Positions 30,624-62,318 of a stretch of DNA of 64,000 bases are shown piece by piece. This stretch comes from Octopus sinensis (Eukaryota): positions 87,730,001-87,794,000 of the forward strand of contig NC_043001.1 of NCBI RefSeq assembly GCF_006345805.1, in the 5' to 3' direction. The position numbers were made by a program, and so were the translations under genes. The notes beneath the pieces are model-generated. The model was not told the DNA's origin. It ran no database searches and worked only from the letters and a program-made list of their open reading frames with translations. Each line of letters starts with the position of its first letter. The stretch's first letter is position 1.

Positions 30624-30656
30624 ATATACATATATATACATATATATCTATATATA

Positions 30657-30692
<36 letters not shown>

Positions 30693-30701
30693 CGTATATA
30701 T

Positions 30702-30777
<76 letters not shown>

Positions 30778-32654: not shown

Positions 32655-34085
32655 ATGGAAGCGATGATATCACTACTACAGCACGATATCCCATTCATTG
32701 ATGACGTCATAGTTGAAAGTAAATTGTTATTATTAAATCATTTAGTTTCATTTCTCTACATTGAGGATAAACTTCAGGTGACCAGAATGAATAACACGGA
32801 AAATGATATGTTTTCGAGTTGTTATGGAAATCTCTGCTCACAACCTGAAGACATGGTTGATCTAGATGTTCTAAATGAGGAATTACACAAAACTACAGGA
32901 CTAAATGAATGCAAGAATTTTACAGAAGATAATATTGGACATATTGATTCTCGAGACGACGATCGCAAAAATGCTACTGATAATCATATTGGTAATGTGA
33001 AGGAAATGATTCAAATAGATGTTAAGGAAGGCCAAAACCATGACCAGTTAAACGATGATGATGAAACAGCAAAACATGACTATTCAAAAGACGAGAAAAC
33101 TAAGAGATATTGTGTATGTGAAGTAGCAGACGATAAGAAGGTGTATGTAAACAACAGATTGAAATGTAAGACACTGAATGGAGAAAAGTCTGTCAGCCCT
33201 GACAACCATCCATTTAAATTGAACAAGAGAAACGCAAAATTAGATAACTCTTTACCAAAGAAAGACAGGGAAAGTTTTGCAATGAACAAAAACTGGATAA
33301 TCAAAGGAGGAAAAATAAATTCGATATCAAAAATAAACCCACATCGCATTAATACAGCCACGGAAATGATTCAAAATAGTAAGACAAATTTAACTTACTC
33401 GTTGTTTTATATTCCGAAATGTTCAAGAAAGGAACAACTAGAAAATAATGATGAAATTTCGTCAACTAGAAGACCATTTGAGGAATGCCAAAATTTCACA
33501 ACACACGAACCCCACCTCAGTATGTCGTCATGTGAATACAGCATTTCGTTGGTAGACATGTCATATAAAAGATCTGTAAGAAAAACAGCTTATCCTCCCA
33601 GAAGAATTTCTGAAAACAAAGTTTCAGCGCCTCTGAGACGTCAGAGGTTTTCATATCCACAAAATAATAATTCAGCAAGCCCAAAATCCAAGCAAGGCCG
33701 TTCACGTTCACAGCAATATACTGAATTAGAAGATTTAGAGAAACTTGCGGAATTAGTGGCACCTCGCTCTACTCCAGACATACCTGTACTATATAGTCCA
33801 CAATATGCACCAGAATATTATGTCGATATAAACCCATATTCACGTCGCGGTACACGACGGCGGTCACGAAAATCACTGGAGAATCACTATTATGTAGTGG
33901 CACCACAGCCATATCAATGTGTACCAGAATATCATCTCGATATAGAGCCAGAATATATTCTTGAGGTAGGGCCAGAATTTTGTCTTGATGTCGAGCCAGA
34001 ATATCCACGGCGAGTTTCACAGAAATTTGCTACATCACATATATCAAATGTACAAGAACCCCCCCCCCCCCATCACTTCACATAA
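32655..34085 (+). CDS. Uncharacterised repeat-protein family, paralog 1 (476 aa; conserved internal ATG at 32787)
   Basis: 1.4-kb stop-free frame in AT-rich DNA, colinear with three other ORFs over ~330 aa. C-terminal part diverged, with YxPEYxxDxxP repeats. Confidence 0.8.
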   Translation: MEAMISLLQHDIPFIDDVIVESKLLLLNHLVSFLYIEDKLQVTRMNNTENDMFSSCYGNLCSQPEDMVDLDVLNEELHKTTGLNECKNFTEDNIGHIDSRDDDRKNATDNHIGNVKEMIQIDVKEGQNHDQLNDDDETAKHDYSKDEKTKRYCVCEVADDKKVYVNNRLKCKTLNGEKSVSPDNHPFKLNKRNAKLDNSLPKKDRESFAMNKNWIIKGGKINSISKINPHRINTATEMIQNSKTNLTYSLFYIPKCSRKEQLENNDEISSTRRPFEECQNFTTHEPHLSMSSCEYSISLVDMSYKRSVRKTAYPPRRISENKVSAPLRRQRFSYPQNNNSASPKSKQGRSRSQQYTELEDLEKLAELVAPRSTPDIPVLYSPQYAPEYYVDINPYSRRGTRRRSRKSLENHYYVVAPQPYQCVPEYHLDIEPEYILEVGPEFCLDVEPEYPRRVSQKFATSHISNVQEPPPPHHFT

Positions 34086-35236
34086 GCATTTCCTCAGAAA
34101 GGCAGCGGCCAAATTACGATAAAATACGAGGTACATATCATTGTCGTCACTGGTCTTTACTACAGAGTACAGATCCAATGGTTTTGCAAGCCTTTAGAAG
34201 GATAAATTAAACAGTAGTTTACGTAGCCAGGACTGAATACAAACCATGGAGAGCCCAGGCTACTTGAAATTCAGTGGGACCGTCATGCACAAGAATTAGT
34301 TTTGGAAATTTAGCAAATATTTATTAGAACGTATCTATTGCATGTAATTGAATTTAACGAGTTAGTAGAGAAGGCTTAAATAAATGACTGAAAATGTCTC
34401 TGTATACACGAAACTGTCTCTGTATACATTTTTCTCACACATTCACTTGCAGTGTTTGATTTTTCCTTCATTGTGAAAAATACACTGGAGGAGGGAAGAA
34501 GTGGGATAGAATACGATAAAATGATAGAAAATTACGTAACAGAAAAATACTGTATATCATTTTAATGGTTGTTGTTGCAAAGCCACGATGAGGGAGTCTG
34601 TGGGTGAGTGGGGGGAAGACAAACATTTGAAAGGTATTAATTTAAACAAAATTTGTTTTAAAAAAATGAAAGGGAAAATCCTCACTAAAACGGGGAAATT
34701 CCAACATATATGGGACAGCTTTTCCGAAAGTCTGTTTTTTCACTTTTAAGGAGTGACGGGGTACAATGAGTAATAGTTACCGCATTTTTGACTTGAGGAA
34801 AAAAATAGTTTTATAAATATTCATTACCTAACAAAAACTACATGAGCTAAGCAAATGATCTTTTCTAAATGCATTAATATACTATAACATTCAGAATACT
34901 ATTTCGGAAACCTATCTCCGCTCTCTTTGAGTATATAAAAGACAAATTTAGATGGGGCAAAATGAGTAAGACAAGATGAGGTAAATTTGTCTTTAAATTT
35001 TCGAGAATAACATTTGAAAAGAAAACCTCATACTCATCAATTTCCCCTCTTAGACACTAGAAAGATCAGAAATTCAACAAAAATTTTAAATCTATAGGTC
35101 AAATGAAGGAAAATCATGGAAAAATGACAGGATGTGAAATAACGAAACTCGACTAGATTAAAAAATCTCAACATAAAATATTCTCTATAGCTTCTATATG
35201 ATCTATTGGAGTAGCTCTCGGCAGAATTCTAGTTTA

Positions 35237-36900: not shown

Positions 36901-37544
36901 TTTATTAACCAAACTCGTTAGTATTTGTATATAGTTGGCAAACAAAAATTGCTTCAAGCTTGAAAAGCATGTTTCATCTTACTAGCATTAACACGATTAA
37001 AACCAAAATCTAGACGTGGTAGTAAATTTTACTAAGTGATTTGCATTTTACACAAAATCTAGAGTGATAGAAAAAATATAATTATAGGTTTGAAATCAGC
37101 AAACCGAGATTAAAATCTTTGTTGCTAGTGTTATCTAGATATTTGGTTATCAGCCTCAATTACAACTGGGTCAAAGTTGAGGAAACATTTCTTGAAAAAA
37201 AGTACATGTTACCTGACTATGTTTCAAACTCTGTCAACTGCAACAACAACTACTGTAGTAACCAATGTTTACATCTAAAACATCCCAAAGGAATTAATTG
37301 GATAACTGCTTCGGAACTGGGGCGCAAACTGTTAATTGTATGAATTGGTGTCATTAATGTGAATAAATCTATGGTTATTTATCAAACAATAGGATCCATT
37401 ACATTTTAAAAATATGTTTGTATATTGAAGGAAAGTTTCTGCATGCAAGATGACTGGGAGGTGGGGAATTATTGAATTGCGTACTCCATACCCTTCATAG
37501 CAGGGGCCTCCGACATCGAGGATGGTCCGGGGCAATTGCTCACC

Positions 37545-38450
37545 TCAGCTTCCTTATAAATCCGGCCCTGTACGTAGTAACAGTCCATTAGCGTCAGAAA
37601 CATCATTTCGTCCTCGTCTCATTTCCAGCTCTAGGTGAAGCACATTGTCACCATATAGATCATCAAGCTTACATCGGAGCAGTTCACTGGAACCAGAAAC
37701 ATCATTTCCTCTTCGTTGCACTTCTAGATCTGGGTGAAGCGTACAATATAGTTTATCAAGTCCATGTCGCAGCAGTTCAGTGCCAGCAGGCCCTTTGTGG
37801 CCTAACCGAAGCACATCGGAGGAATACAAGGAACGTGACTTTTAAACAACAGATACAATTGCTGATCCTCGGAAATTTGAACATCAAGTATCTCCTGTCG
37901 CAACACGAGACCCTGGCACTTCGAGACGATGATTTGGCAGTATTTGGGGAAGATGAACGTCGTCCAGATTCAAAGAGTGATTAGTCGAGTGGGTCATGTT
38001 TTCAGATTATGTCGATGAACTATATCCTCTGTCAGAGGAGGAGATAAACTCTGTCTTAAAAAAAGAAGTGGCATAAAGCGTCCTATCGTCGCTATAGTCT
38101 AAGTCAGATTAAGTCGCGAATTAGACTTCAAATCACAAACATCAAACAATGGCTATTTGAACAAGCACACCCTGTTACAACACGGGCCCGTGGCACTTCA
38201 AGACAGAACGTGCTTTTGACGATAATTTGACAACATTTGGGGAAGATGCACATTGTTAAAAAATCAAAGAGTGATTTGTCAAGTAGGTCATGTTTTTCAG
38301 TGAACAAACATCCTCAATCAGTAGAGGAAATAAGCTCTGTCCAAAAAACGAAGTGGCATAGTGTTCTATCGTCTTTATGGTTTAAGCCAGAGGAAGTCGC
38401 GAATTAGACCTCAAATTCCAAACATTGCACAATGGCTATTTGAATACAAT
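37545..38450 (+). pseudogene. Degenerate Ser/Arg-rich repeat coding remnant, partly related to the family C-terminus
   Basis: 99-bp repeat (37595/37694) reading ETSFRPR...HRSSSLEP resembles HRDSLER and PDTSFRPRRSS of the paralogs. Followed by two ~280-bp units; several in-frame stops. Confidence 0.5.
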
Positions 38451-41173: not shown

Positions 41174-41236
<63 letters not shown>

Positions 41237-41352
41237 ACGAAACCAAAATAATGACTGTCATATTCATTGATGACGTCATAGTTGAAAGTGAATCATTTTT
41301 CAATCACTGAGTTTCATTTCTCTGCATTGAGAGTCAATTTGAGGTGACCAGA

Positions 41353-43146
41353 ATGAATACTACAGAGACTTATGTTTTTTCGAAGTGTTATGAGAACCTC
41401 TGTTCCGAAACTGAAAAAATGGCTGACCATTCGCAATATCCAGATGTTCTAAATGAGGGATTACACAAAACTACAGAACTGAATGAAGGCGAAGATTTTA
41501 CAGAAGAAAATACTGGACACATTGATTCTCGAGACGACGATCGTGAAAATAATACTGAGAATCATATTGGTGATGTGAGGGAAATGATTCAAATAGATGT
41601 TAAGGAAGGTCAAGACAATGACAAGTTAAACGATGATGATGAAACAGCAAAACATGACTATTCAAAAGAGGAGAAAACTAAGAGAAGTGCATGTGAAGTA
41701 GCAGACGATAAGAACATGTATGTAAACAACAGATTGGAATGTAAGACACTGAATGGAGAAAAGGATGTCTGCCCTGACAAACATCCAGTAAAATTGAACA
41801 AGAGAAGCGCAGAATTAGATAACTCTTTACCGAAGGAAGACGGGGAAAATTTTGCAACGAACAAAAAATGCATAATCAAAGGTGGAAAAATATCTTCGAT
41901 ATCAAGAATAAACCCACATCGCATTAATACAGCCACGGAAAGGATTCAAAATAGTAAGACAAATTTAACAAGCTCGTTCTATATTCCTAAACGTTCAAGG
42001 CAGGAACAACCAGAAAATAATGATGGAATTTCGTCAACTAGAAGACCATTTGAGGAATGGCAAAATTTCACAGCACACGAACAACACCTCAGTATACCAA
42101 AACCATATTTTCACCGTATGTCGTCATGTGAATACAGAATTTCGGTGGTAGACATGTCATATTACAGATCTGAAAGAAAAACAATTCATCCTCCTGGAAG
42201 AATTTCTGAAAGCAAAGTTTCAGCGCCTCTCCGGTGTCGGAGTGTTTCATATTTACAGAATAACAATAATTCAGCAAGCCCAAAATCCAAGCAAGGCCTT
42301 TCACGTCCACGGCGATATAGTCACTTACGAGATTCACTGGAACTTGCTAAATTACGATGGGCATCAAAAAACCGGGGCTCTCCCTTCACTGCACAACCAC
42401 ATACTTCACGATATGCATCAGAATATCACCACAATGTAAGACCACCACACGTATACAGAACTGCACTGAGAGTTGATAGACGACCCCCACGATATGTATC
42501 AGACTATCACATTCATGTAGAGCCATCTAATTCCAAGCATAACTGTTCACGTTCACAGCAATATAGTCAATTAGGAGATCTGAAACTTACTAGATCACAA
42601 TGGGAAGCAATAGTACGGCGCCTTCGCTCCACTGAACAACCACATAGTTCCCGATATGTACCAGACTATCACATTCATGTAGAGCCATCTAATTCCAAGC
42701 ATGACCGTTCACGTTCACAGCAATATAGTCAATTAGGAGATCTGAAACTTACTAAATCACAATGGGCATCAATAGTACGGCGCTTTCGCTCCACTGAACA
42801 ACCAGACTATGACATTAATGTAGAGCCATTTCAACCATCTAGTCGATCACCAGAATCACTGAAAGATACTAGATCACATCAACTACATAGTTCAGAGCTA
42901 TCATATCTACATCGCGATTCACTGGAACGAATTGCATCAAATGTACGGCATCCAATCTCCTCTTCACATAACCGCGCGGGTCGTCGTATCTTCACAAAAG
43001 CAGCGACCAAATTACGAGATAAAGTACGCAGTATTTTTGGTAAAAAACGTACATGGGCGCCAGACACATCATTTCGTCCTCGTCGCAGTTCTTTACCAAA
43101 GAGTACCGATCCCGCGGTTCTTAAAACCTTTAAAAGAATAAATTAA
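41353..43146 (+). CDS. Uncharacterised repeat-protein family, paralog 2 (~597 aa from MNTTE)
   Basis: Open 1.8-kb frame with two 54-aa repeats. The upstream in-frame ATG at 41251 is cut off by TGA at 41308. Confidence 0.85.
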   Translation: MNTTETYVFSKCYENLCSETEKMADHSQYPDVLNEGLHKTTELNEGEDFTEENTGHIDSRDDDRENNTENHIGDVREMIQIDVKEGQDNDKLNDDDETAKHDYSKEEKTKRSACEVADDKNMYVNNRLECKTLNGEKDVCPDKHPVKLNKRSAELDNSLPKEDGENFATNKKCIIKGGKISSISRINPHRINTATERIQNSKTNLTSSFYIPKRSRQEQPENNDGISSTRRPFEEWQNFTAHEQHLSIPKPYFHRMSSCEYRISVVDMSYYRSERKTIHPPGRISESKVSAPLRCRSVSYLQNNNNSASPKSKQGLSRPRRYSHLRDSLELAKLRWASKNRGSPFTAQPHTSRYASEYHHNVRPPHVYRTALRVDRRPPRYVSDYHIHVEPSNSKHNCSRSQQYSQLGDLKLTRSQWEAIVRRLRSTEQPHSSRYVPDYHIHVEPSNSKHDRSRSQQYSQLGDLKLTKSQWASIVRRFRSTEQPDYDINVEPFQPSSRSPESLKDTRSHQLHSSELSYLHRDSLERIASNVRHPISSSHNRAGRRIFTKAATKLRDKVRSIFGKKRTWAPDTSFRPRRSSLPKSTDPAVLKTFKRIN

Positions 43147-43524
43147 ACAGTATTTTACGTAGCCAAGACTGAATTTAAACCATGGAGGTCCTGAGGACTT
43201 GAAATTCTGTGGGCCCCCTCTTACAGAAGAATTAAAGTTATGGAAATATAGAAAATTTATATCTCAAAACCCATCTATTGGATGTAATTGGATGTGATGA
43301 GTTAGCAGAGAAATTTTAAATAAATGACTGAAAATGTCGCTTTACAGATGTCAAAATTCAATTCTTTTCCTCACACATTCATTTGCAGTGTTCGTTTTTA
43401 TGTTCAATGTGGTAAGTAGAATGGCGGAGGGAAGAAGGGGGATAAAATACGAAAAAATGAGAGAACCCCCCCACCCAATAAAAATAAAAATATACCATTT
43501 TAGTGGTTGTTACTGTTCCAAAGC

Positions 43525-43577
<53 letters not shown>

Positions 43578-45364
43578 TGTGTGTGTGTGTGGGGGGAGAG
43601 ATATAGATTTGAAAGACATGGATTTTAATACATTTTGTTTTAAAAAAGTTTCCCTTCATTGTTTTGCTATCAAGATAAAGGGATAATCCTCACAAAACGG
43701 GGTAATTTCAACATGTATGTGATAGCTATTCCAAAAACCTGTGTTCTCCGTCTCCAGTAAGGATGGTGGGGTACAATGGGTAACATTGACTGCACTTTTG
43801 ACTTTGAGGAAAAAAAGTAGTTTTACAAGCAAATAACCTTCTCTAAATGCATCAAATATATTGTAACTTTCAAAACACTATTTCACAAAATTATCTCTGC
43901 TCTCTTTCAGCATATTAAAGACAAAGTTAGATGGGGTCCAAATGAATAAGACAAGATAAGGTAAATTTGCCTCTTCAAATTTTTCAGAATAACATTTGAA
44001 AAGAAAACCTCGTACTCATCAATTTCCACTCTTAAAACTAGGAGGATCAGAAATTCAGCAAAAATTTCAAATAACTAGGTCAAACGAAAGAGAATTATGG
44101 AAAAATGGCACGATATGAAATTAACGAAACCCAACTAAATCAAATAACTCAACATAAAATATTCTCTATAGCTTCTCATGATCTGCTGGAGCAGCTCTCG
44201 GCAGAAAACTAGTTTAAGCACCCCATATAACTTTTATATTTTTGGGAATTTTCAAAAGTTTTTTGCGGATTTGTGTTCTACACACGGGAATTCATACAAC
44301 TATTTAAAAATTCTCTTTTAGTTTTTCGAATTTTTCAAAAAAACCACACAGTTTAATATACGGACATTCCGAATTTTTTTTGTTGCTTAATCGCAGCAAC
44401 AGACCATTAAATGTGTTTATGGGGAGAAAGATTTTGAAAAACATCAAAACGTCAGAACGACAAGCAAAAGGGGTGTGTACCAGCTGGCTTTGAGGTATGC
44501 TAAAAATTACAGCTAAATAGCTCTTAAATCACACACACACACACACAAAATGTGTGTAGAATACAAATGCGTAAAAATCTTCTGAAAATTTCAAACAATA
44601 AAAGTTATGAGAGGTTATATGGGGTGCTTATTCATTCTGGTTCTCTTCCTGATACATTTCTACACCACGTAGTTAAAGAGAAGAGATTACTGAAATTAGT
44701 CATAACTTATTTTGCCCCAGTTTAAAAATTATTTGTTCAATATTGAAAATAATCAAATTGGACATTAATGCGGGGAAAATTGATGTGTAGTCTAACAGAG
44801 AAAAGAAAATTGATTGTTGAACATCAAAAATTACACTAGGTAACAAATTTCAAGTATTTTGTTTTTGTTACAGACACCACTTGGTTCCTACCAAATTTCT
44901 GATGTTAATTTCAGATCTGATATCTAAATTTCTTTATCACGTCCAGATTTTGTGTAACCGAAAATCCCTATTATTCATTATTTCTCATCCGCTTCTATTA
45001 CGAAAGTTGTCTAAGCTACTTTTCCATACCATGTTCCATATTAAGTATACTTAAGTAAGTGAACAGGGAAGTCTTTCCTCCTTTATTCTGGCTTAAGACA
45101 GACAGCGGAATTCCGCAGGCAGAGTTGTCACCCCTGCACTCAACCATCCACCCAAAGCGCCTTAGTATTTTGTTACTACCTATTTCTTTATTACCCACAA
45201 GGGGCTAAACATAGATGGGACAAACATGGACAGACATAGGTATTAAGTCGATTCCATCGACCCCAGTGCGTAACTGGTACTTAATTTATCGACCCCGAAA
45301 GGATGAAAGGCAAAGTCGACCTCGGCGGAATTTGAACTCACAGCATAACGACAGACGAAGTTAC

Positions 45365-46680: not shown

Positions 46681-47034
46681 TATTAACCAAACTCGTTAGA
46701 TTTTGTATATAGTTGGTAAACAAAAATTGCTTTAACCTTGAAAAGCATGTTTCATATAATTGGTACTAAGATGATAAAAACCAAAATTTATTTGTGGTAG
46801 GGATCATGGTTTTGACGATAATCTGGCAGCATTTGGGGAAGATGCACATCGTTCAGATTCAGACTGTTGATTCTTCAAGTTGGTCATTTTCTTTAGATTT
46901 TGTTAGTGGACTAGTTTCTATGTCAGCGGAGAAAACTCTATCTTAAAAAAGTGGCATAAAACGTCCTACCATCTCTATGGTCTAAACCAGAGAAAGATGC
47001 GAATTAGGCTTCAAATGCCAAAACATTGAACAAT

Positions 47035-49325: not shown

Positions 49326-49765
49326 TCTGCCGCACCTTGCATGAATGTGGTCTGTATTTCTGCCGCACCTTGCATGAATGTGGTCGGTATTTCTGCCGTA
49401 CGTTCCATCAATGTAGGATTTATTTCTGCCAAACGTTGCATGAATGTGGTCGGTATTTCTGCTGCACCTTGCATGAATGTAGTCGGTATTTCTGCCGCAC
49501 GTTCCATTAATGTATCAACGTGGGAGGTATTTCTGCCGCACCTTGCATGAATGTGGTCGGTATTTCTGCTGCACGTTCCAACAATGTAGGATTTATTTCT
49601 GTCAAACGTTGCATGAATGATACATTAATGGGACGTGCGGCAGAAATAAATCCTACATTGATGGAACGTGCGGCAGAAATACCGACCACATTCATGCAAG
49701 ATGTGGCCGAAATACCTCCCAGATTAATACATGAATGGAACGTGTGGCAGAAATACCGACCACAA
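49326..49765. repeat. 33-bp minisatellite, ~9 direct units then ~4 inverted units
   Basis: Unit tctgccgcaccttgcatgaatgtggtcggtatt; orientation flips at ~49620. Confidence 0.92.
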
Positions 49766-50789: not shown

Positions 50790-51093
50790 TCTTCTTCTTC
50801 TTCTTCTTCTTCTTCTTCTTCTCTTCTTCTTCTTCTTCTTCTTTCTCTTCTTCTTCTTCTTCTTCTTCTTCTTCTTCTTCTTCTTCTTCTTCTCTTCTTC
50901 TTCTTCTCTTCTTCTTCTTCTTCTCTTCTTCTTCTTCTCTTCTTCTTCTTCTTCTTCTTCTTCTTCCTTTCTCTTCTTCTTTTCTTCTTCTTCTTCTTCT
51001 TCTTCTTCTTCTTCTTCCTTTCTCTTCTTCTTCTTCTTCTTCTTCTTCTTCCTCCAAATTCTTCGTGTGTGTGAGTGTGTGTGTGTGTGTGTA

Positions 51094-51158
<65 letters not shown>
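50790..51158. repeat. Compound (TTC)n, (GT)n, (GA)n microsatellite
   Basis: Direct reading. Confidence 0.97.
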
Positions 51159-51159
<1 letters not shown>

Positions 51160-53088
51160 GGGGGGGATTAAAATTCTGTTCGCAGAAAGGTAATGAGAAA
51201 AGAAAGAGGCGTCAGTAACGAGAAGAGCAGTGCATTGATAGGCGAGGAATAAAATAACAGGCACTGAAAATACAGATTTTTCTGCCGCTAGTTTTTGGTT
51301 TGCAAACCAGAAGTCTTTGTTTTTAGCTCAGAAATGATTTTTCCGTTTCTGTTTCATACCGTTACAAATCTAATAATGTTTTCGTTTAGCATTCACATCC
51401 AGGAACTCCGTACATTTTCTTTTTCTTTCTCTTGTGTGTCTGGGTTCAATTGTTTGTAGTGGCGTTGGTATATTACCATTTTCTTTCGACGACATCTTGT
51501 TTATTCTTTTTTCTTTGTTCTAAAAACAAAATACTTGAAATATGTTGCCTACTGTAAATTTTTGTTTAACAGTCAATTTTCTTTTTTCTGTTGGACTGCA
51601 CATCAATTTTCCCCATATTAATGTCCAATTTGATAATTTTTAATATTGAAAAAATAATTTTTAAACTGGGGCAAAATAAGTAATGACTAATTTCAATAAA
51701 CTCTTCTCTTTAACTACATGGTGCAGAAATGTATCAGGAAGTGAACCAGAATGAATAAGCACCCCATATAACCTCTCATAACTTTTATTGTTTGAAATTT
51801 TCAGAAGATTTTTGCGAATTTGTATCCTACACACGGGAATCCATACGACTATGAAAATCAACGAAAACTTTTGTGTGTGTGTGTGTGTGATTTAAGAGCT
51901 ATTTGGCTGTAATATTTAGCACATCTCAAGACCAGCTGGTACACTCCCCTTTTGCTTGTCATTCTGACGTATTGAAAAATTCGAAAAATTGAAAGAGAAT
52001 TTTTTAATAGTTGTATGAATTCCCGTGTGTAGAACACAAATCCGCAAAAAATCAAAAAAATCAAAAAGTTATGAGAGGTTATATGGAGTGCTTAAACTGG
52101 AATTCTGCCGAGAGCTACTCCAGCAGATCATGAGAAGCTATAGAGAATATTTTATGTTGAGTTATTTGATTTAGTTGGGTTTCGTTAATTTCATATCGTA
52201 CCATTTTTCCATAATTCTCTTTCGTTTGACCTAGATATTTGAAATTTTTGCTGAATTTCTGATCTTTCTAGTGTCTAAGAGTGGAAATTGATGAGTACGA
52301 GATTTTCTTTTCAAATGTTATTCTGAAAAATTTGAAGAGACAAATTTACCTTATCTTGTCTTATTCATTTTGCCCCATCTAAATTTGTCTTTAATATGCT
52401 GAAATAATTTTGTGAAATAGTGTTTTGAAAGTTATAGTATATTAATGCATTTAGAGAAGGTTATTTGCTTGTAAAACTACTCTTTTCCTCTAAGTCAAAA
52501 GTGTAGTCAATATTACTCATTGTACCCCACCACACTTACTGGTGGCGGAGAAAGCAGGCTTTTGGAATAGCTGTCACATACATGTTGAAATTCTCTCTTT
52601 ATCTTGATAGCAAAACAACGAAGAGAGACTTTTTTAAAACAAAATGTATTAAAATCCATGTCTTTCAACTCCATATCTCTTTCCAGCACACACACACATT
52701 CTCATCATGGCTTTGGAACAGTAACAACCACTAAAATGGTATATTTTTATTTTCATTTGGGGGGGGGGGGTTCTGTAATTTTTTCGTATTCTATCCCCCT
52801 TCTTCCCTCCGCCATTGTACTTATCACATTGAACATAAAAACGAACACTGCAAGTGAATGTGTGAGGAAAAGAATTGAATTTTGACATCTGTAAAGCGAC
52901 ATTTTCAGTCATTTATTTAAAATTTCTCTGCTAACTCATCACATCCAATTACATCCAATAGATGGGTTTTGAGATATAGATTTTCTATATTTCCATAACT
53001 TTAATTCTTCTGTAAGAGGGGCCCACAGAATTTCAAGTCCTCAGGCCCTCCATGGTTTAAATTCAGTCTTGGCTATGTAAAATACTGT

Positions 53089-55506
53089 TTAATTTATTCT
53101 TTTAAAGGTTTTAAGAACCGCGGGATCGGTACTCTTTGGTAAAGAACTGCGACGAGGATGAAATGAGGTGTCTGGCGCCCATGTACGTTTTTTACCAAAA
53201 ATACTGTGTACTTTATCTCGTAATTTGGTCGCTGCTTTTTTGAAGATACGACGACCCGCGCGGTTATGTGAAGAGGAGATTGGATGCCGTACATTTGATG
53301 CAATTCGTTCCAGTGAATCTCGATGTAGATATGATAGCTCTGGACTATGTAGTTGATGTGATCTAGTATCTTCCAGTGATTCTGGTGGTCGACTAGATGG
53401 TTGAAATGGCTCTACATTAATGTCATAGTCTGGTTGTTCAGTGGAGCGAAGGCGACGTGCTATTGCTTCCCATTGTGATCTAGTAAATTTCAGATCTCCT
53501 AATTGACTATATTGCTGTGAACGTGAACGGTCATGCTTGGAATTAGATGGCTCTACATGAATGTGATAGTCTGGTACATATCGGGAACTATGTGGTTGTT
53601 CAGTGGAGCGAAGGCGCCGTACTATTGCCTCCCATTGTGATCTAGTAAGTTTCAGATCTCCTAATTGACTATATTGCTGTGAACGTGAACGGTCATGCTT
53701 GGAATTAGATGGCTCTACATTAATGTCATGGTCTAGTACATATCGGGAACTATGTGGTTGTTCAGTGGAGCGAAGGCGCCGTACTATTGCTTCCCATTGT
53801 GATCTAGTAAGTTTCAGATCTCCTAATTGACTGTATAGTTGTGAACGTGAACGGTCATGCTTGGAATTAGATGGCTCTACATTAATGTCATGGTCTAGTA
53901 CATATCGGGAACTATGTGGTTGTTCAGCGGAGCGAAGGCGCCGTACTATTGCTTCCCATTGTGATCTAGTAAGTTTCAGATCTCCTAATTGACTGTATAG
54001 TTGTGAACGTGAACGGTCATGCTTGGAATTAGATGGCTCTACATGAATGTGATAGTCTGATACATATCGTGGAGGTCGTCTATCAATTTTCAGTGCAGCT
54101 CCACGTTTGCGTAATGGTTTTACGGTATGGAAATATTCTGATATATATCGCGGACTATGTAGTTGATATGATCTAGTATGTTCCAGTGATTCTGATGGCC
54201 GACTAGCTGGTTGAAATGGCTCTACATTAATGTCATAGTCTGATACATATCGTGGAGGTCGTATATCAACTCTCAGTGCAGTTTTGTGTACGTGTGGTGG
54301 TCCTACATTGTGGTGATATTCTGATACATATCGTGAAGTATGTGGTTGTGAAGTGACGTGAGAGCCCCGGTTTTTCAATGCCTTTCGTAATCCATCAATC
54401 TCGTAATTGACTATATCCAGTGAATCTCGTAATTGACTATATTGCTGTGAACGTGAAAGGCCTTGCTTGGATTTTGGGCTTGCTGAATTATTATTATTCT
54501 GTAAATATGAAACACTCCAACACCGAAGAGGCGCTGAAACTTTGCTTTCAGAAATTCTTCTATGAGGATAATTTGTTTTTCTTTCAGATCTGTAATATGA
54601 TATGTCTACCACCGAAAGTCTGTATTCACATGACGACATACGGTGAGGATATGGTTTTGGTATACTGAGGTGTTGTTCGTGTGTTGTGAAATTTTGGCAT
54701 TCCTCAAATGGTCTTCTAGTTGACGAAATTCCATCATTATTTTCTGGTTGTTCCTGCCTTGAACGTTTAGGAATATAGAACGAGCATGTTAAATTTGTCT
54801 TACTATTTTGAATCCTTTCCGTGGCTGTATTAATGCGATGTGGGTTTATTCTTGATATGGAAGATATTTTTCCTCCTTTGATTATGTATTTTTTGTTCGT
54901 TGCAAAATTTTCCTCGTCTTCTTTTGGTGAAAAGTTATCTAATTCTGCGCTTCTCTTGTTCAATTTTACTGGATGTTTGTCACGGCAGACATCCTTTTCT
55001 CCATTCAGTGTCTTACACTCCAATTTGTTGTTTACATACATGTTCTTATCGTCTGCTACTTCACATACACATCTCTTAGTTTTCTCGTCTTTTGAATAGT
55101 CATGTTTTGCTATTTCATCATCATCATTTAACTGGTTATTGTTTTGATCTTCCATAACATCTATTTGAATCGTTTCCATCACATCACCAATATGATTCTC
55201 AGTATTATTTTCACGATCGTCGTCTCGAGAATCAATGTGTCCAGTATTTTCTTCTGTAAAATCCTCGCCTTCATTCAGTTCTGTAGTTTTGTGTAATCCC
55301 TCATTTAGAACATCTGGATATTGCGAATGGCCAGCCATTTTTTCAGTTTCGGAACAGAGGTTCTTATAACACTTCGAAAAAACATAACTCTCTGTGGTAT
55401 TCATTCTGGTCACCTCAAATTGACTCTCAATGCAGAGAAATGAAACTAAATGGTTTAATAATGATTTCCTTTCAACTATGACGTCATCAATGAATGTGAC
55501 AGTCAT
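53089..55506 (-). CDS. Uncharacterised repeat-protein family, paralog 3 (805 aa; MNTTE ATG at 55404)
   Basis: Open 2.4-kb frame with four 162-bp tandem repeats at ~53430-54075. Confidence 0.87.
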   Translation of the reverse strand: MTVTFIDDVIVERKSLLNHLVSFLCIESQFEVTRMNTTESYVFSKCYKNLCSETEKMAGHSQYPDVLNEGLHKTTELNEGEDFTEENTGHIDSRDDDRENNTENHIGDVMETIQIDVMEDQNNNQLNDDDEIAKHDYSKDEKTKRCVCEVADDKNMYVNNKLECKTLNGEKDVCRDKHPVKLNKRSAELDNFSPKEDEENFATNKKYIIKGGKISSISRINPHRINTATERIQNSKTNLTCSFYIPKRSRQEQPENNDGISSTRRPFEECQNFTTHEQHLSIPKPYPHRMSSCEYRLSVVDISYYRSERKTNYPHRRISESKVSAPLRCWSVSYLQNNNNSASPKSKQGLSRSQQYSQLRDSLDIVNYEIDGLRKALKNRGSHVTSQPHTSRYVSEYHHNVGPPHVHKTALRVDIRPPRYVSDYDINVEPFQPASRPSESLEHTRSYQLHSPRYISEYFHTVKPLRKRGAALKIDRRPPRYVSDYHIHVEPSNSKHDRSRSQLYSQLGDLKLTRSQWEAIVRRLRSAEQPHSSRYVLDHDINVEPSNSKHDRSRSQLYSQLGDLKLTRSQWEAIVRRLRSTEQPHSSRYVLDHDINVEPSNSKHDRSRSQQYSQLGDLKLTRSQWEAIVRRLRSTEQPHSSRYVPDYHIHVEPSNSKHDRSRSQQYSQLGDLKFTRSQWEAIARRLRSTEQPDYDINVEPFQPSSRPPESLEDTRSHQLHSPELSYLHRDSLERIASNVRHPISSSHNRAGRRIFKKAATKLRDKVHSIFGKKRTWAPDTSFHPRRSSLPKSTDPAVLKTFKRIN

Positions 55507-55515
55507 TTTGGCATC

Positions 55516-55599
<84 letters not shown>

Positions 55600-55602
<3 letters not shown>

Positions 55603-56433
55603 TAGTTTTATTTTTATAGCGTGCTTTCACTTCACTACCGGGCACAGCTCTGTGTGCCTTGGGTATGTGCTGTGATTTGTTGTGATGCTCTGATGGTTAT
55701 TGTATGGAAAGTGTTCTGCGTAGGATGTGTGCAGTGCCTAGTAGTGCAATTTTCTGTATGTTATATGTGTTTGTAAGTCCTGGTGTTTTTGTTATGTATT
55801 TGTCTGAATATTTTTTTATCATGCCTAATGCACCTACTATGATAGGAATTGTTTCTGTTTTCAGATTCCACATTCTAGTTACCTCTATTTCCAGGTCTTT
55901 GTATTTTGAGAGTTTCTCCATTTCTTTTAGAGACACGTTGTCATCAGCCGGTATTGATACATCAATTAGAAAGCATTTTTTTTCTTCATGATCTCTGACA
56001 ACTATATCTGGTCTGTTGGCCTTAATTTCTCTATCTGTGTGTATCGGCATATCCCAGAGTATGGTTGCTTTCTCGTTTTCTGTGACCTTTTCTGGTGTGT
56101 GCCTATACCATCTTTTTTCTGTTGTTATTCCATAATGTTGGCATAGCTTCCAATGTATGTAGGTTCCAACTCTGTCATGTCTGTGAATATATTCCTTCTT
56201 AGCCAGGTCTGGGCAGCTAGCGATAATATGATTTATTGTTTCTTGTCCATCTCCACATATTCTGCAGTTACTTGTAATATTTCTTTTCATTACATGTTTT
56301 TGGTAATTTCTGGTGGGGAGGCTTTGGTCTTGTGCTGCAATTAAAAATCCCTCTGTTTCTGCTTTGAGTCCTGAACTTCTCAACCATTGCTGGGATTTTT
56401 CTTTGTCTATTTCTTTTGCGTTTAGTTTAGTCC

Positions 56434-56436
<3 letters not shown>
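55600..56436 (-). mobile_element. 5'-truncated R4/Dong-clade non-LTR retrotransposon (RLE domain) in (TAA)n
   Basis: Open frame ETEGFLIAAQDQ, CRICGDGQETINHIIASC (CCHC), RHD, RPDIVV...LIDVSIP (PD-D/ExK), EKLSKY, IIVGALG. Short 3' UTR with AATAAA; TAA repeats on both sides. Confidence 0.9.
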
Positions 56437-56469
<33 letters not shown>

Positions 56470-59400
56470 TATTATTATTATTATTAGTAGTAGTAGTAGT
56501 AGTAGTAGTAGCAGCAGCAGCAGCAGCAGCTGCTAACCAAACCCTAATTCTCTCTGACTCCGAGACTCAAAACCACTACTGATGGCGACAGCAGCAACAG
56601 CGGCGGTCACCAGTCAAATTCCACACGTTAATATGAATATTATTTCAAATATATATAACAGCTGATAATGGTTCAATTGGTGAAACAATAAACAAAATGT
56701 CTAGCTGTATTCAGTTACGTATATTTCCGTTCTGTATTCAAACATTGTGGTTGGTAAGATGAGCACTAATTAAATACTGAAGTAGATTTTAATTAACTAT
56801 TTCTTCATCTTAAAATTTTCAGTTTCCATCATAAAATTGCAGTTTCGTGGTTATGCTAAAAATTCATAGAGGTATCTAATCGATTCCAACACCGAAAGAC
56901 AAGCCACAAAATATATCTACCTAGAATTGGAAAAACTCAATCGCAAGTGTGTATTTCGTGCTACGCTGAATATTACGAAATGATAAGAGGATCATTTTAT
57001 TGCCGAAGTCGTTTGGGAGAGCGTGTATTTCGTACCTGATAAAATAAGTTCGTGTCGACCAGATTTTGTAGCTTCACTAATGTCCAGTTAAGTTACATGT
57101 AGCTGAGATAAGAACTAAAGCCGCATGTCAAACAGAGTAACTGAATTTTCTGGGAAATGAATTGAGAGGAAGCCATTCCCGAAAGTTCGAAAGGAGGGTT
57201 GGTAAAGATCTACAAAACTTCGATAGTTTATTAATTCTTTACTATTTGGTTATATAGCTACTTTGAAACAACTATTGTTTTACTACCCCAAATGTTACTT
57301 AGCGAGGTCTCAGAATGCTATAACTTGTAGACACGAGCTATGACAATGAACAGATTTAATTGTCGCTTGACAAACAAGTTTTCTTAAAACCCATCGGTGT
57401 AGCTAAGCAATAGTCTTGAGGGAAGTGTAGAGTGAGGAAAAGTGCTTGTTATTGGAAGAGTTGTCAAGTATTGTCGCATTTCTATCAGCTAGATATCATG
57501 ATATCTTCTTTTATATTATAGAAGACTAGCGAAGTGTTCAAGAGAGGATGATTGGACATACACGCGTTTGTCATGAGTGTACTTTGAGCAGACATTTTCC
57601 GATGTACTTTAGGTTGAGGAAAATAGATAATTTCGAAAGTCACTTGGTCTAGTAGTCATACAAATTAATATCGTTATCTCTTCATCATGTTAAAACATCC
57701 AGCTGAATATGATGTGGACAAGGCTGAAAGACCTCTTAAAAGGTATTTTCTTCTTTAAACGAAACATTGTAAACTGTCTTTAAGTATCACGGGACGTGGA
57801 AGAAAGAATAGAGAAAGAAACTTTACATGCCAGTAAACTTTTTCCTAAAAGGTGAGAATTTAATGAGTGGAATAAGGGACTGATTTTGCAGTTTTGCTTA
57901 GAAATAGGAGTTTGAACAGGGAATAGGCTCAGAGTTAGAGGACGGTTTTCAGGTGTGTGTGCCTTAACGTCTTAGATAAACGGTCACCCATTGAAAGGAA
58001 ACCTTGTGTGTGTATCTATGTGTGTGTATGTATATGTATATGTGTGTGTGTATGCATGTGTATATGGGATGGCAGACAGTTTAGAAGTAAGGAAAAGGCT
58101 CAAGTTTTTAGATATTTTTCATTTGTTTTACTTATCCTTTCTATAGTTATGCAGAGCTTTTGGACTACGAATTTTATTCTCCTTTCAGACTTTTATTACC
58201 AGTGATTGCGTCAAGTGTGACTCAAGGATGGGGAGTTTCTAGCATGGTATGCAACTGTGCATTCATTGGTGATGTGATTCTATCTTATATATATTGTTTC
58301 TCATTCTTGATTACATACACAGAACCTCTCACACACACATCCGAACACGCATTCATGCACACACACGTGCATGTACGCACACACCTATACATACATACAT
58401 AAGCATGCATATACACACATATACATATACATACACACACATAGATACACACACAAGGTTTCCTTTCAGTGGGTGACCGTTGCTTTAAGATGGTAAGGCA
58501 CACACCTGAAAACCGTCCTCTAACTCTGAGCCTATTCCCTGTTCAAACTCCTATTTCTAAGCAAAACTGCAAAATCAGTCCCTTATTCCACTCATTAAAT
58601 TCTCACCTTTTAGGAAAAAGTTTACTGGCATGTAAAGTTTCTTTCTCTATTCTTTCTTCCACGTCCCGTGATACTTAAAGACAGTTTACAATGTTTCGTT
58701 TAAAGAAGAAAATACCTTTTAAGAGGTCTTTCAGCCTTGTCCACATCATATTCAGCTGGATGTTTTAACATGATGAAGAGATAACGATATTAATTTGTAT
58801 GACTACTAGACCAAGTGACTTTCGAAATTATCTATTTTCCTCAACCTAAAGTACATCGGAAAATGTCTGCTCAAAGTACACTCATGACAAACGCGTGTAT
58901 GTCCAATCATCCTCACTTGAACACTTCGCTAGTCTTCTATAATATAAAAGAAGGTATCATGATATCTAGCTGATAGAAATGTGACAATACTTGACAACTC
59001 TTCCAATAACAAGCACTTTTCCTCACTCTACACTTCCCTCAAGACTATTGCTTAGCTACACCGATGGGTTTTAAGAAAACTTGTTTGTCAAGCGACAATT
59101 AAATCTGTTCATTGTCATAGCTCGTGTCTACAAGTTATAGCATTCTGAGACCTCGCTAAGTAACATTTGGGGTAGTAAAACAGTAGTTGTTTCAAAGTAG
59201 CTATATAACCAAATAGTAAAGAATTAATAAACTATCGAAGTTTTGTAGATCTTTACCACCACCTCCTTTCGAACTTTCGAGAATGGTTTCCTCTCAATTC
59301 ATTTCCCAGAAAATTCAGTTACTCTGTTCGGCATGCGGCTTTAGTTCTTATCTCAGCTACATGTAACTTAACTGGACTTTAGTGAAGCTACAAAATCTGG

Positions 59401-60167
59401 TCGACACGAACTTATTTTATCAGGTACGAAATACACGCTCTCCCAAACGACTTGGGCAATAAAATGATCCTCTTATCATTTCGTAATATTCAGCGTAGCA
59501 CGAAATACACACTTGCGATTGAGTTTTTCCAATTCTAGGTAGATATATTTTGTGGCTTGTATTTCGGTATTGGAATCGATTAGATGCTTCTATGATTTTT
59601 TAGCATAACCACGAAACTGCAATTTTATGATGGAAACTGAACATTTTAAGATGAAGAAATAGTTAATTAAAATCTACTTCGGTATTTAATTAGTGCTCAT
59701 CTTACCAACCACAATGTTTGAATACAGAACGGAAATATACGTAACTGAATACAGCTAGACATTTTGTTTATTGTTTCACCAATTGAACCATTATCAGCTG
59801 TTATATATATTTGAAATAATATTCATATTAACGTGTGAAATTTGACTGGTGACCGCCGTTGCTGCTGCTGCTTCTGTTGTTGTTGTTAAGCAACAAGACG
59901 GGTAAGGGTGATTGGGTGATGGTCTAGGGCTTAGGGGCGGGAGATCCCAGACTTTTGAAGAAAAAAAAAACCGTTGGTCGTCTTGTTGTAGTCGAGGGCT
60001 CTTCGTTGACGCCGGACACCACTAGGAGGTGGCTCTCTCAGTCCCTGGAAATGGAAATCTCCAGGTCCAAATTCTTGAACGGCTGTAGCTGCTGTCGCCA
60101 TCAGTGGTGGTTTTGAGCCTCGGAGGCAGAGAGAAATAGGGTTTGGTTAGCGATGCTAGTACTACTG

Positions 60168-60273
<106 letters not shown>

Positions 60274-60386
60274 ACGATGCCAAAATGACTGTCACATTCA
60301 TTGATGACGTCATAGTTGAACGGAAATCATTTTTCAATCACTGAGTTTCATTTCTCTGCATTGAGAGTCAATTTGAGGTGACCAAA

Positions 60387-62318
60387 ATGAATACCACGGA
60401 GAATTATATTTTTTCGAAGTGTTATGAGAACCTCTATTCCGAAACTGAAAAAATGGCTGACCATTCGCAATATCCAGATGTTCTAAATGAGGGATTACAC
60501 AAAACTACAGAACTGAATGAAGGCGAGGATTTTACAGAAGGAAAAACTGGACACATTGATTCTCGAGACGACGATCGTGAAAATAATACTGAGAATCATA
60601 TTGGTGATGTGATGGAAATGATTCAAATAGATGTTAAGGAAGGTCAAGACAATGACAAGTTAAACGATGATGATGAAACAGCAAAACATGACTACTCAAA
60701 AGATGAGAAAACTAAGAGAAGTGCATGTGAAGTAGCAGACGATAAGAACGTGTATGTAAACAACAGATTGGAATGTAAGACACTAAATGGAGAAAAGGAT
60801 GTCTGCCCTGACAAACATCCAGTAAAATTGAACAAGAGAAGCGCAGAATTAGATAACTCTTTACCGAAGGAAGACGGGGAAAATTTTGCAACGAACAAAA
60901 AATGCATAATCAAAGGAGGAAAAATATCTTCGATATCAAGAATAAACCCACATCGCATTAATACAGCCACGGAAAGGATTCAAAATAGTAAGACAAATTT
61001 AACAAGCTCGTTCTATATTCCTAAACGTTTAAGGCAGGAACAACCAGAAAATAATGATGGAATTTCGTCAACTAGAAGACCATTTGAGAAATGGCAAAAT
61101 TTCACAGCACACGAACAACACCTCAATATACCAAAACCATATCCTCGCCGTATGTCGTCATGTGAATACAGACTTTCGATGGTAGACATGTTATATAACA
61201 GATCTGAAAGAAAAACAAATTATCCTCGTAGAAGAATTTCTGAAAGCAAAGTTTCAGCGCCTCTCAGGCGTCGGAGTGTTTCATATTTACAGAATAATAA
61301 TTCAGCTAGCCCAAAATCCAAGCAAGGCCTTTCACGTTCACAGCAATATAGACAATTACGAGATTCACTGGATATAGTTATTTACGAGATTGATAGATTA
61401 CGAAAGGCATTAAAAAACCGGCGCTCCCACATCGCTTCACAACCACATACTTCACGTCCACGGCGATATAGTCACTTACGAGATTCACTGGAACTTGCTA
61501 AATTACGATGGGCATCAAAAAACCGGGGCTCTCCCTTCACTGCACAACCACATACTTCACGATATGTACCAGAATATCACCAAAATGTAAGACCACCACA
61601 CGTACACAAAACTGCACTGAGAGTTGGTAGACGACCTTCACGATATGTATCAGACTATCACATTCATGTAGAGCATAATTCCAAGCATAACCGTTCACGT
61701 TCACAACCATACAGTCAATTAGGAGATCTGAAACTTACTAGATCACAATGGGCATTAATAGCACGGCGCCTTCGCTCCACTGAACAACCACATAGTTCCC
61801 GATATGTACCAGACTATCACATTAATGTAGAGCCATCTAATTCCAAGCATGACCGTTCACGTTCACAGCAATATAGTCAATTAGAAGATCTGAAACTTAC
61901 TAGATCACAATGGGCATCAATAGTACGGCGCCTTCGCTCCACTGAACAACCAAACTATGACATTAATGTAGAGCCATTTCAACCATCTAGTCGACCACCA
62001 GAATCACTGGAAGATACTAGATCACATCAACTACATAGTCCACGATATATATCAGACTTTCAGACTATAGAGCCATCATATCCACATCGAGATTCACTGG
62101 AAAGAAATGCATCAAATGTAGGGAAACCTGTCTCCTCTTCACATAATCGCGCGGGTCGTCGTATCCTCACAAAAGTAGCGAACAAATTACGAGATAAAGT
62201 ACGCAGTATTTTTGGTAAAAAACGTATATGGGCGCCAGACACCTCATTTCATCCTCGAAGTTATTTACCAAAGAATGCCAGTTCCGCGGTTCTTCAAACC
62301 TCTAAAAGAATAAATTAA
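60387..62318 (+). CDS. Uncharacterised repeat-protein family, paralog 4 (~643 aa from MNTTE)
   Basis: Open 1.9-kb frame with two repeats (159/162 bp). The upstream ATG at 60285 is cut off by TGA at 60342. Confidence 0.85.
   Translation: MNTTENYIFSKCYENLYSETEKMADHSQYPDVLNEGLHKTTELNEGEDFTEGKTGHIDSRDDDRENNTENHIGDVMEMIQIDVKEGQDNDKLNDDDETAKHDYSKDEKTKRSACEVADDKNVYVNNRLECKTLNGEKDVCPDKHPVKLNKRSAELDNSLPKEDGENFATNKKCIIKGGKISSISRINPHRINTATERIQNSKTNLTSSFYIPKRLRQEQPENNDGISSTRRPFEKWQNFTAHEQHLNIPKPYPRRMSSCEYRLSMVDMLYNRSERKTNYPRRRISESKVSAPLRRRSVSYLQNNNSASPKSKQGLSRSQQYRQLRDSLDIVIYEIDRLRKALKNRRSHIASQPHTSRPRRYSHLRDSLELAKLRWASKNRGSPFTAQPHTSRYVPEYHQNVRPPHVHKTALRVGRRPSRYVSDYHIHVEHNSKHNRSRSQPYSQLGDLKLTRSQWALIARRLRSTEQPHSSRYVPDYHINVEPSNSKHDRSRSQQYSQLEDLKLTRSQWASIVRRLRSTEQPNYDINVEPFQPSSRPPESLEDTRSHQLHSPRYISDFQTIEPSYPHRDSLERNASNVGKPVSSSHNRAGRRILTKVANKLRDKVRSIFGKKRIWAPDTSFHPRSYLPKNASSAVLQTSKRIN

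Follow-up and report, generated by a model that had tools for sequence, protein, structure and literature searches.

The 64,000-nucleotide stretch of the Octopus sinensis genome analyzed here (contig NC_043001.1, positions 87,730,001 to 87,794,000; hereafter 'the window', numbered from its first nucleotide) raises a simple question. What are the four long open reading frames (ORFs) that remain uninterrupted in its second half, and what might switch them on? A first-pass annotation, made from the letters alone, had described an array of four paralogs of a lineage-specific protein with no recognizable domain. Our analysis leads us to favor, with somewhat more confidence than doubt, the explanation that these are real genes found so far only in octopods, that each is a compact unit driven by a cyclic AMP (cAMP) response element (CRE), and that their products are disordered, multivalent scaffolds.

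Exactly four ATG-to-stop ORFs of at least 200 amino acids (standard code) are present between positions 30000 and 64000, and these match the annotated frames in location, orientation (+, +, -, +) and length (476, 597, 805 and 643 amino acids). The listed starts of two of them had to be revised, however. ORF1 as listed (32655-34085, plus strand) and ORF3 as listed (53089-55506, minus strand) each begin at an ATG that lies inside a 5′ leader. Their upstream methionine extensions (…FIDDVIVE.K…) are leader and not coding sequence because the same DNA carries stop codons in other members of the family. From the family-conserved start, ATG AAT ACC ACA GAG (MNTTE; MN(T/N)TE), the coding region of ORF1 begins with MNNTE at 32787 and occupies 32787..34085 on the plus strand (432 amino acids), and that of ORF3 begins with MNTTE at 55404 and occupies 53089..55404 on the minus strand (771 amino acids). 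ORF2 (41353..43146, plus strand) encodes 597 amino acids, and ORF4 (60387..62318, plus strand) encodes 643 amino acids with 98% identity to the Octopus vulgaris protein P0001.

Chance openness is not a plausible source of such frames. Stop triplets account for 5.65% of the window, and a 600-codon open frame would arise by chance with a probability of ~7e-16. The four longest stop-free frames in the entire window (845, 657, 611 and 504 amino acids) are these ORFs, and the fifth longest is a 361-amino-acid Tc1/mariner transposase. All four share an N-terminal region of ~330 amino acids, with pairwise identities of 75-91% in the alignment. The four ORFs are real protein-coding genes, albeit weakly constrained ones, and they form the youngest sub-branch of the family described below. 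Scans of the window with Rfam and for tRNAs returned no matches.

The best conserved part of each locus proved to be a leader of ~100 nucleotides immediately upstream of each ATG, as evident from an alignment of the 400 upstream nucleotides of nine members. Identity between members within this leader is 0.77-0.89, with a synonymous-site identity of only ~0.49-0.65, and it remains at 0.86-0.89 even between members that can barely be aligned as proteins. The core of the leader reads CATTG[A/G]TGACGTCA[C/T]AGTTGAA, in which TGACGTCA is a full palindromic CRE. This octamer shows no variation in any of 12 family leaders, where it is located 60-85 nucleotides before the ATG. A promoter-proximal full CRE marks genes that respond to cAMP and CREB or to CREM, such as those with the somatostatin, c-fos, protamine and transition-protein promoters. 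The conserved full-site CRE near each gene start is what a CREB/CREM/ATF target promoter should carry, and transcription of these genes is probably controlled by a factor of the CREB/ATF type.

The distribution of the element points in the same direction. Four copies of TGACGTCA occur in the window, compared with 0.58 expected, and none of 100 shuffled sequences reaches four. Every one of them sits 82-85 nucleotides before one of the four family ATGs: at 32702..32709 (+) for ORF1, within the conserved leader CATTGATGACGTCATAGTTGAA and 85 nucleotides from the start codon, and at 41271..41278 (+), 55479..55486 (-) and 60305..60312 (+) for ORF2, ORF3 and ORF4, respectively, each 82 nucleotides from the start codon. 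When the region was extended to 114 kb, all seven octamers present were found upstream of family genes. The longer 20-mer TTGRTGACGTCAYAGTTGAA has nine sites in the 2.72-Gb genome, all at family genes, whereas the reversed control has none; the leader of a tenth member departs from this 20-mer by a single base.

A trinucleotide microsatellite precedes every family leader, including those of L014, L018-L022 and L032. In the window these tracts are (TAC)21 at 41174..41236 (+), (TAA/TTA)27 at 55518..55599 (-) and (CTA)28 plus (ATA)10 at 60156..60272 (+), directly upstream of the leaders of ORF2, ORF3 and ORF4, respectively. The repeat is variously (TAC)n, (TAA)n or (CTA)n, with (TGC)n among distant members. 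Paralogs differ in its length, and its presence is conserved even where its sequence differs.

In ORF2, ORF3 and ORF4, the reading frame ends with AGA ATA AAT TAA (R-I-N-stop), and the poly(A)-signal hexamers AATAAA and ATTAAA overlap this stop codon, as seen at 43137..43147 (+) for ORF2 and 62309..62319 (+) for ORF4, and an ATTAAA overlaps the stop codon of an extended ORF1 frame. Given an uninterrupted ORF, a CRE-bearing leader and poly(A) hexamers at the stop codon, each gene looks like a compact unit with a single coding exon. We propose that each such gene would act as an autonomous transcription unit that is switched on by a basic leucine zipper factor of the CREB/CREM/ATF type, and that its expression would be inducible by cAMP, activity or stress, or else specific to a stage of differentiation.

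ORF1 differs from its neighbors in several respects. A homopolymer of 13 C nucleotides (34059..34071, +) shifts the frame into an early stop (PPPPHHFT-stop), and the ancestral tail would be regained if the run lost two bases or gained one. This tail is intact in the alternative frame at 34061..34210 (+), where it ends in …SLHISISSERQRPNYDKIRGTYHCRHWSLLQSTDPMVLQAFRRIN followed by the stop codon that the ATTAAA overlaps. The O. vulgaris ortholog P0004 continues as PPPP-SLHISISS…STDPMVLQAFRRIN, and the corresponding sequence in O. sinensis is open and 100% identical at 34061-34207, but in the other frame. The truncation may therefore stem from a frameshift of very recent date, or else from a long-read homopolymer or assembly error. 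Part of the ORF1 tail lies in a different frame from that of ORF2-4, and its last ~20 residues return to the shared frame.

Is the coding capacity of these frames maintained by selection? Ratios of nonsynonymous to synonymous divergence (dN/dS; Nei-Gojobori method, NG86) over the N-terminal 330 codons range from 0.53 to 1.10 across the family, which agrees with the earlier description of these proteins as fast evolving. Values are 0.77-0.92 among ORF2-4 (dS ~0.05), 0.75-0.80 for ORF1 against ORF2-4 (dS ~0.17) and ~1.0-1.1 in comparisons with the paralog L018. A sliding window reveals constraint at residues 1-30 and at residues ~91-135, a block that includes an invariant CEVADD (pN/pS 0.43-0.49), and ratios near 1 elsewhere. 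Synonymous divergence is also uneven: pS is 0.21-0.31 in the first ~200 codons versus 0.41-0.49 in codons 250-345 (32787-33776 and the corresponding paralogous segments). This lower 5′ divergence could result from gene conversion or from constraint at the nucleotide level near the 5′ end.

The frame itself is far better protected than the residues that it encodes. At a divergence (d) of 0.025, the chance of remaining stop-free under neutrality is 0.11 for ORF2, 0.055 for ORF3 and 0.085 for ORF4. This probability falls below 1e-3 at d≥0.1, and yet paralogs of 388-1481 codons at dS 0.2-1.1 are all open. Coding indels among ORF2-4 are whole codons without exception (144, 54 and 324; 3, 120, 3, 27 and 3), once an apparent 14+1 pair is attributed to a split in the alignment, whereas the 1.5-kb 3′ flanks contain ~14-16 indels per pair, mostly not multiples of three. 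The annotators' claim of whole-codon indels thus holds for ORF2-4 but not for ORF1, which has frame-shifted stretches relative to them. Because stops are absent, because only indels of multiples of three separate ORF2-4, and because the four O. vulgaris orthologs are intact, the frame is clearly under protection, as the annotation had proposed. Selection keeps the frame open and hardly constrains the residues.

The four genes belong to a larger family, and so the proposed array of four paralogs is accurate for the window but too small for the locus. A six-frame search of the O. sinensis genome, followed by a genome search with the leader motif, identified at least 10 members: seven on C5 at 87.76-87.83 Mb (~68 kb), two on C5 at 17.98 Mb and one on contig C12. 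The order in the C5 cluster is ORF1> ORF2> <ORF3 ORF4> L030> L018> L019>. The six-frame search yielded L018 (a 1481-amino-acid ORF ~23 kb past the end of the window, with long SPRxS-type repeats), L019 (388 amino acids, ~34 kb past the end) and, at C5:17.98 Mb, L020 and L021 (482 and 927 amino acids). The leader motif led to L030 (C5:87801918), in which the leader and a truncated N-terminal part are followed by a 1397-amino-acid frame with about ten modules of ~110 amino acids. At this locus (L033/L034, C5:87801900-87806400), the N-terminal part and the 1397-amino-acid frame lie in different frames. The same motif search found L032 (C12:59327955 onward), a distant member with acidic N-terminal repeats.

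Several observations on individual members and their database models deserve mention. Tandem acidic repeats (DDIYSQNSD.ENIEGDVTDDVKTT) replace the usual middle of the N-terminal region in L032, such that this member is recognized mainly through its CRE leader (L032; L022/L023). In L021, the canonical ATG has become TTG and is followed by a 2-nucleotide deletion. The start is annotated (MGFSSYEHL) at a newly arisen in-frame ATG only a few codons further on, as if the start codon had been rescued. ORF2 corresponds to RefSeq LOC118763368 of O. sinensis, for which isoform X2 was the model compared, and XP_036358764.1 from the same species equals ORF2 residue for residue over roughly the first 420 amino acids. 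The C-terminal residues of isoform X2 derive from the L030 locus, ~30 kb from ORF2, and this model is therefore probably chimeric.

Intact orthologs of all four ORFs are present in O. vulgaris (P0004, P0012, P0002 and P0001). The ortholog of ORF3 shares ~98% of aligned residues and is set apart by a single clean repeat unit of 27 amino acids. Relatives were also found in O. bimaculoides and, among Logan contigs, in one further octopod, and all are open. When ORF4 was compared by phmmer with 5.8e9 proteins, all eight matches were octopod proteins (O. vulgaris, O. sinensis, O. bimaculoides and the Logan octopod) that are named 'hypothetical' or 'uncharacterized'. These word-indexed searches were also conducted with the C-terminal module of L020 and with the distant member P0011, and returned nothing beyond octopod proteins. 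A hidden Markov model (HMM) built on 332 positions of the N-terminal region from nine sequences was searched exhaustively against 1.84e9 representative proteins and gave seven matches, all of them family members. The gene family is therefore restricted to octopods so far, as the annotation had anticipated, in protein databases that hold few annotated cephalopod genomes. A literature search with LOC and XP identifiers, the RefSeq name and general terms located no paper on the family. The sequences themselves are already in public databases as unnamed or composition-named models, and what is new is the invariant CRE leader that is common to the whole family.

The annotation had also noted a palindromic, ampliconic organization, and this is borne out by the architecture of the locus. 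The units of ORF1 and ORF2 are repeated in direct orientation at a distance of 8.6-9.7 kb, with similarity that continues for several kilobases beyond the stop codons. ORF2 and ORF3 are inverted copies in a tail-to-tail arrangement (arms 41250-44823 and 51563-55507), and ORF3 and ORF4 form a head-to-head palindrome that is centered near 58229 with a spacer of 539 nucleotides. Its left arm (51563..57959) contains ORF3 and its flanks plus a zf-RVT retroelement fragment (55697-56437) without counterpart in the right arm (58499..63638), which carries ORF4. The inner arms (57200-57959 and 58499-59258, 760 nucleotides) are 99% complementary, and the gene-bearing parts (51563-55565 and 60226-63638) are 91-95% complementary. 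This high inner identity could reflect conversion near the center or mosaic exchange with ORF2. The 3′ part of ORF3 is 97% identical to ORF2. The possibility that the inner arms are a foldback transposable element was rejected, given that the only other places in the genome with their sequence lie upstream of the three family genes that follow.

Recent segmental duplication (dS ~0.05 among ORF2-4) enlarged the array, and an inverted event among these duplications produced a palindrome with arms of more than 5 kb. The array evolves by the gain and loss of repeats. Modules have been lost as well. Remnants of ancestral C-terminal parts that contain stop codons are located ~3.4 kb downstream of ORF1 (37504..38441, +), where RS repeats, a DPxxFxxQV…WDPDTSR module (DPxxFxxQV.PF.TWDPDTSR) and a terminal …RIRPxxPN motif can still be discerned, and a degenerate remnant of the terminal module lies downstream of ORF2 (46946..47020, +). 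These parts, which persist as remnants ~3.4-3.8 kb 3′ of ORF1 and ORF2, are intact in L018, L020 and L021. Since only stop-riddled downstream remnants remain near the genes of the window, their subfamily must have lost the ancestral C-terminal modules, although it retains a vestige (…KKRTWAPDTSF…) plus a terminal …RIN.

The predicted products are intracellular, charge-segregated, repeat-bearing proteins that are expected to be disordered. Residues 1-200, within the shared N-terminal region that was first described as rich in Asp, Glu, Asn and Lys, are acidic (isoelectric point (pI) ~4.9, net charge -15). The C-terminal half was described at that time as basic, which is true of ORF2-4 (pI 10.1-10.9, net charge +27 to +33, 24-37 RS/SR dipeptides and 28-40 His residues) but not of ORF1, whose C-terminal part has a pI of 5.7, is rich in Pro, Glu and Tyr, and contains repeats of 8 amino acids. 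The 54-amino-acid repeat reported for the family is evident in ORF2-4, where Tandem Repeats Finder detects the corresponding 162-bp unit at 42490..42804 (+, 1.9 copies), 53431..54069 (-, 3.9 copies) and 61637..61952 (+, 2.0 copies), respectively. Neither a signal peptide nor a transmembrane segment was found (maximum Kyte-Doolittle value, 19-residue window, ≤0.43), and the grand average of hydropathy is about -1.2.

As had been suspected, most of the chain is predicted by AlphaFold2 to lack a stable fold. For full-length ORF4, the mean per-residue confidence (pLDDT) is 35.5, the global template-modeling score (pTM) is 0.17, and 580 of 643 residues score below 50; the ancestral C-terminal module of ~103 amino acids reaches a pLDDT of 51. 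The underlying alignments are shallow (15 sequences for ORF4 and 13 for the C-terminal module). The only helices predicted in ORF4 span residues 3-17, 317-350, 362-378 and 587-609, along with one short amphipathic helix per 54-amino-acid repeat (…LTRSQWEAIVRRLRS…). The helix at 317-350 is the sole region that scores as high as 71-84, and it has a 3-4-3-4 hydrophobic pattern in LRDSLDIVIYEIDRLRKAL. A heptad-patterned helix at residues ~317-350 is predicted for both ORF3 and ORF4. In addition, the conserved short motifs RR[I/T]SESKVSAPL and R-x-x-S-Y match consensus sites for basophilic kinases.

These characteristics suggest how such proteins might function. A polyampholyte of this kind would act through bulk or multivalent properties rather than through a fold. 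Its basic repeat half could bind polyanions such as RNA, DNA, or the acidic region of the same protein or of a partner, and its short helices could self-associate to yield a protein of the scaffold or condensate type. The annotation had put forward condensate, RNA- or chromatin-binding and germline roles purely as possibilities. Basophilic kinases such as protein kinase A (PKA) might tune these interactions at the two conserved motifs. A more ambitious version of this proposal, which we consider rather unlikely, holds that octopods have wired a private disordered family as a block to the cAMP-CREB pathway, such that the same signal induces its members, by activity in neurons or through a CREM-like route in spermatids, and modifies their products through RRxS sites for PKA, while the number of scaffold repeats changes quickly between species.

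Efforts to place the family among known proteins produced candidates that had to be rejected. Among Pfam families, only CCDC85 (PF10226) exceeds its curated cut-off, and it does so with ORF3 alone (25.5 bits versus 23.8), by a score summed over the repeats. No stretch passes individually, the match is limited to profile positions 4-39 of 192, and ORF1, ORF2, ORF4 and seven further members give no hit; the resemblance lies between the short helical motif of the repeats and the first ~36 positions of the profile. The other Pfam matches of the 11 family proteins (Invasin_D4, Cas12f TNB and others) were rejected as noise that was either below threshold or summed over repeats. Sequence and profile searches of the PDB with a single protein, an N-terminal profile and a C-module profile yielded nothing with E<0.4. 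Reflectins can likewise be set aside, as there are no matches to [MF]D-x5-MD-x5-MD or to the relaxed MD-x5-MD, and Met accounts for 0.8-1.9% of residues. Both are taxon-restricted, clustered families with predicted disorder, modular repeats and enrichment of Arg, His and Tyr. However, the octopod proteins are rich in Ser, Arg, Asn, Glu and Lys, and no sequence similarity was detected. These outcomes agree with the first-pass annotation, which recognized no domain, transposable element ORF or reflectin motif.

Two known genetic systems offer parallels. Compact genes that depend on CREB or CREM, such as those for mammalian protamines and transition proteins or c-fos, resemble the octopod genes in that all members of the family are compact units with a palindromic CRE within ~85 nucleotides of the start codon, and mammalian spermatid genes are also clustered and encode basic, fast-evolving products. 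In contrast, there is no sequence homology, and the octopod proteins are far larger and have an acidic N-terminal half. The ampliconic palindromes of mammalian sex chromosomes are likewise inverted segmental duplications with arms of more than 5 kb that carry paralogs, and the 99% arm identity near the center of the octopus locus suggests arm-to-arm conversion; the octopus locus is small by comparison (arms of ~5-6 kb, four to seven genes). A lineage-specific disordered family in a tandem or palindromic array is a known kind of phenomenon, but as a protein family this one has no relative.

The parallel with spermatid genes raises the possibility that these are testis-specific ampliconic genes under a CREM-like activator, with products that are basic sperm-chromatin or perinuclear proteins. 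This would be a special case of the explanation we favor, and we regard it as possible but unlikely. Mammalian spermatid genes depend on CREM and the CRE, and a germline role would fit the palindromic layout with its near-identical inner arms, the uninterrupted ORFs, the full CRE close to each of them, the very short untranslated regions (UTRs) that are predicted, the basic, Arg/Ser-rich C-terminal half, and dN/dS values as high as those typical of reproductive proteins. However, known cephalopod protamines are small and very Arg-rich, whereas the octopod proteins have an overall pI of only 9.3-9.8 and an extensive acidic N-terminal part, along with 6-11 Cys residues. Older members (L020, L021 and L030) have acidic or neutral C-terminal modules in place of basic repeats, and a CRE is equally typical of genes induced by neuronal activity or stress, such that germline, neuronal-activity and stress-induced readings all fit the element. 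Quite improbable, by our assessment, is a decaying or 'proto-gene' locus of nonfunctional young duplicates that are open only through recency. The joint neutral probability that ORF2-4 are all stop-free is ~5e-4 even before the absence of frameshift indels is counted, at least eight paralogs (388-1481 codons) are open at dS 0.2-1.1, orthologs are open in O. vulgaris, in O. bimaculoides and in one more octopod, pN/pS is 0.43-0.49 in two blocks, and the leader is clearly constrained. These facts must be set against features that such a locus would be expected to display, namely dN/dS of 0.77-0.92 among ORF2-4 and ~1.0-1.1 against L018, a coding identity equal to the flank identity, the frameshift and frame-shifted segments of ORF1, and degenerate family remnants nearby.

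The RefSeq auto-name of the neighboring paralog XP_036359032.1, 'serine/arginine repetitive matrix protein 2-like', implies an SR-related nuclear speckle or splicing protein. This identity is suggested by 24-37 RS/SR dipeptides per protein, by the long SPRxS-type repeats of L018 and by the database name itself. We consider it very improbable, and SRRM2/SR-related membership was rejected, because none of the 11 family proteins has a cwf21, PWI or RRM domain. The dipeptides are sparse and scattered within the 54-amino-acid repeats rather than gathered into an extended RS domain, ORF1 and several other members lack an RS-rich part, and the name reflects composition alone: what the family shares with SRRM2-like proteins is low-complexity, Ser/Arg-rich disordered regions. 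Finally, an origin as a mobile element or retrocopy, or recent domestication from one, might be entertained for a multicopy, uninterrupted coding region with a poly(A) signal at its stop codon and TE-rich surroundings (Tc1/mariner, IS1595-like and zf-RVT fragments of transposable elements (TEs)), but this strikes us as extremely improbable. Only ~10 copies exist, at three loci in 2.72 Gb. No reverse transcriptase, integrase, transposase, gag or other TE or viral domain is present in any member, even though neighboring TE ORFs were recognized as such. The duplicated segments are large (8.6-9.7 kb) and include flanks without terminal repeats that bound the unit, and the upstream DNA is confined to the cluster rather than dispersed. 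A processed retrogene was also rejected: all genomic matches are uninterrupted family ORFs, with no intron-bearing parent found in the genome search, and the longest A-run in the 400 nucleotides after the stops is 5-6.

Several observations nevertheless weigh against the favored explanation of CRE-driven genes for scaffold proteins. Coding identity among ORF2-4 (0.91-0.95) is no higher than the identity of their 3′ flanks (0.87-0.94), and, as far as residues are concerned, these copies cannot be told apart from neutral sequences. ORF1 is truncated in the O. sinensis assembly. Between the CRE and the ATG lies a TATA-like element whose conservation does not extend to the most distant members, and the CRE could reside in a 5′ UTR or intron instead of upstream of the start site. 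Considered as a possible splice acceptor or donor region, the leader has an upstream CAG in some copies and the arrangement GAG/GTGACCAG/ATG in all, but ORF2-4 have no upstream AG and there is no pyrimidine tract. The RefSeq models P0003 and P0010 splice within or between paralogs, which represents either real introns or artefacts of mapping paralogous reads. The Logan contigs with relatives (SRR11869384-394) look genomic, since their ends are microsatellites, they include the promoter as well as 1 kb of non-coding 3′ sequence, and they have no poly(A) tail. Exact-match look-ups of the window's own proteins for transcript evidence gave no match. Moreover, nucleic acid binding, self-association and phosphorylation are suggested by composition only.

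The remainder of the window holds features of other kinds. An uninterrupted 361-amino-acid frame of the Tc1/mariner type (6375-7460; HTH_Tnp_Tc3_2 plus DDE_3), the same frame that ranks fifth in length, possibly comes from a recently active element, and an IS1595-like DDE fragment is present at 22409-22858. An (AT)n tract of ~780 bp occupies 30000-30782. Between ORF2 and ORF3 lie a 33-bp tandem array that is followed directly by its own inverted copy (49326-49728) and a low-complexity block of (TCT)~90, (GT)n and (GA)n (50790-51159).

Of the many taxon-restricted genes of cephalopods, very few have a regulatory or functional handle, and this family now gains a regulatory hypothesis that is precise and testable. 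The 20-nucleotide motif that bears the CRE opens a direct route to the timing and site of their expression, and might also serve as a compact candidate promoter for octopus reporters. The locus further illustrates how selection can hold a frame open while residues drift almost freely, in the company of repeat turnover, module loss, inverted duplication and possibly arm-to-arm conversion. If the genes prove to be neuron-inducible or germline-specific, then they would represent a lineage-specific output of a deeply conserved signaling pathway.

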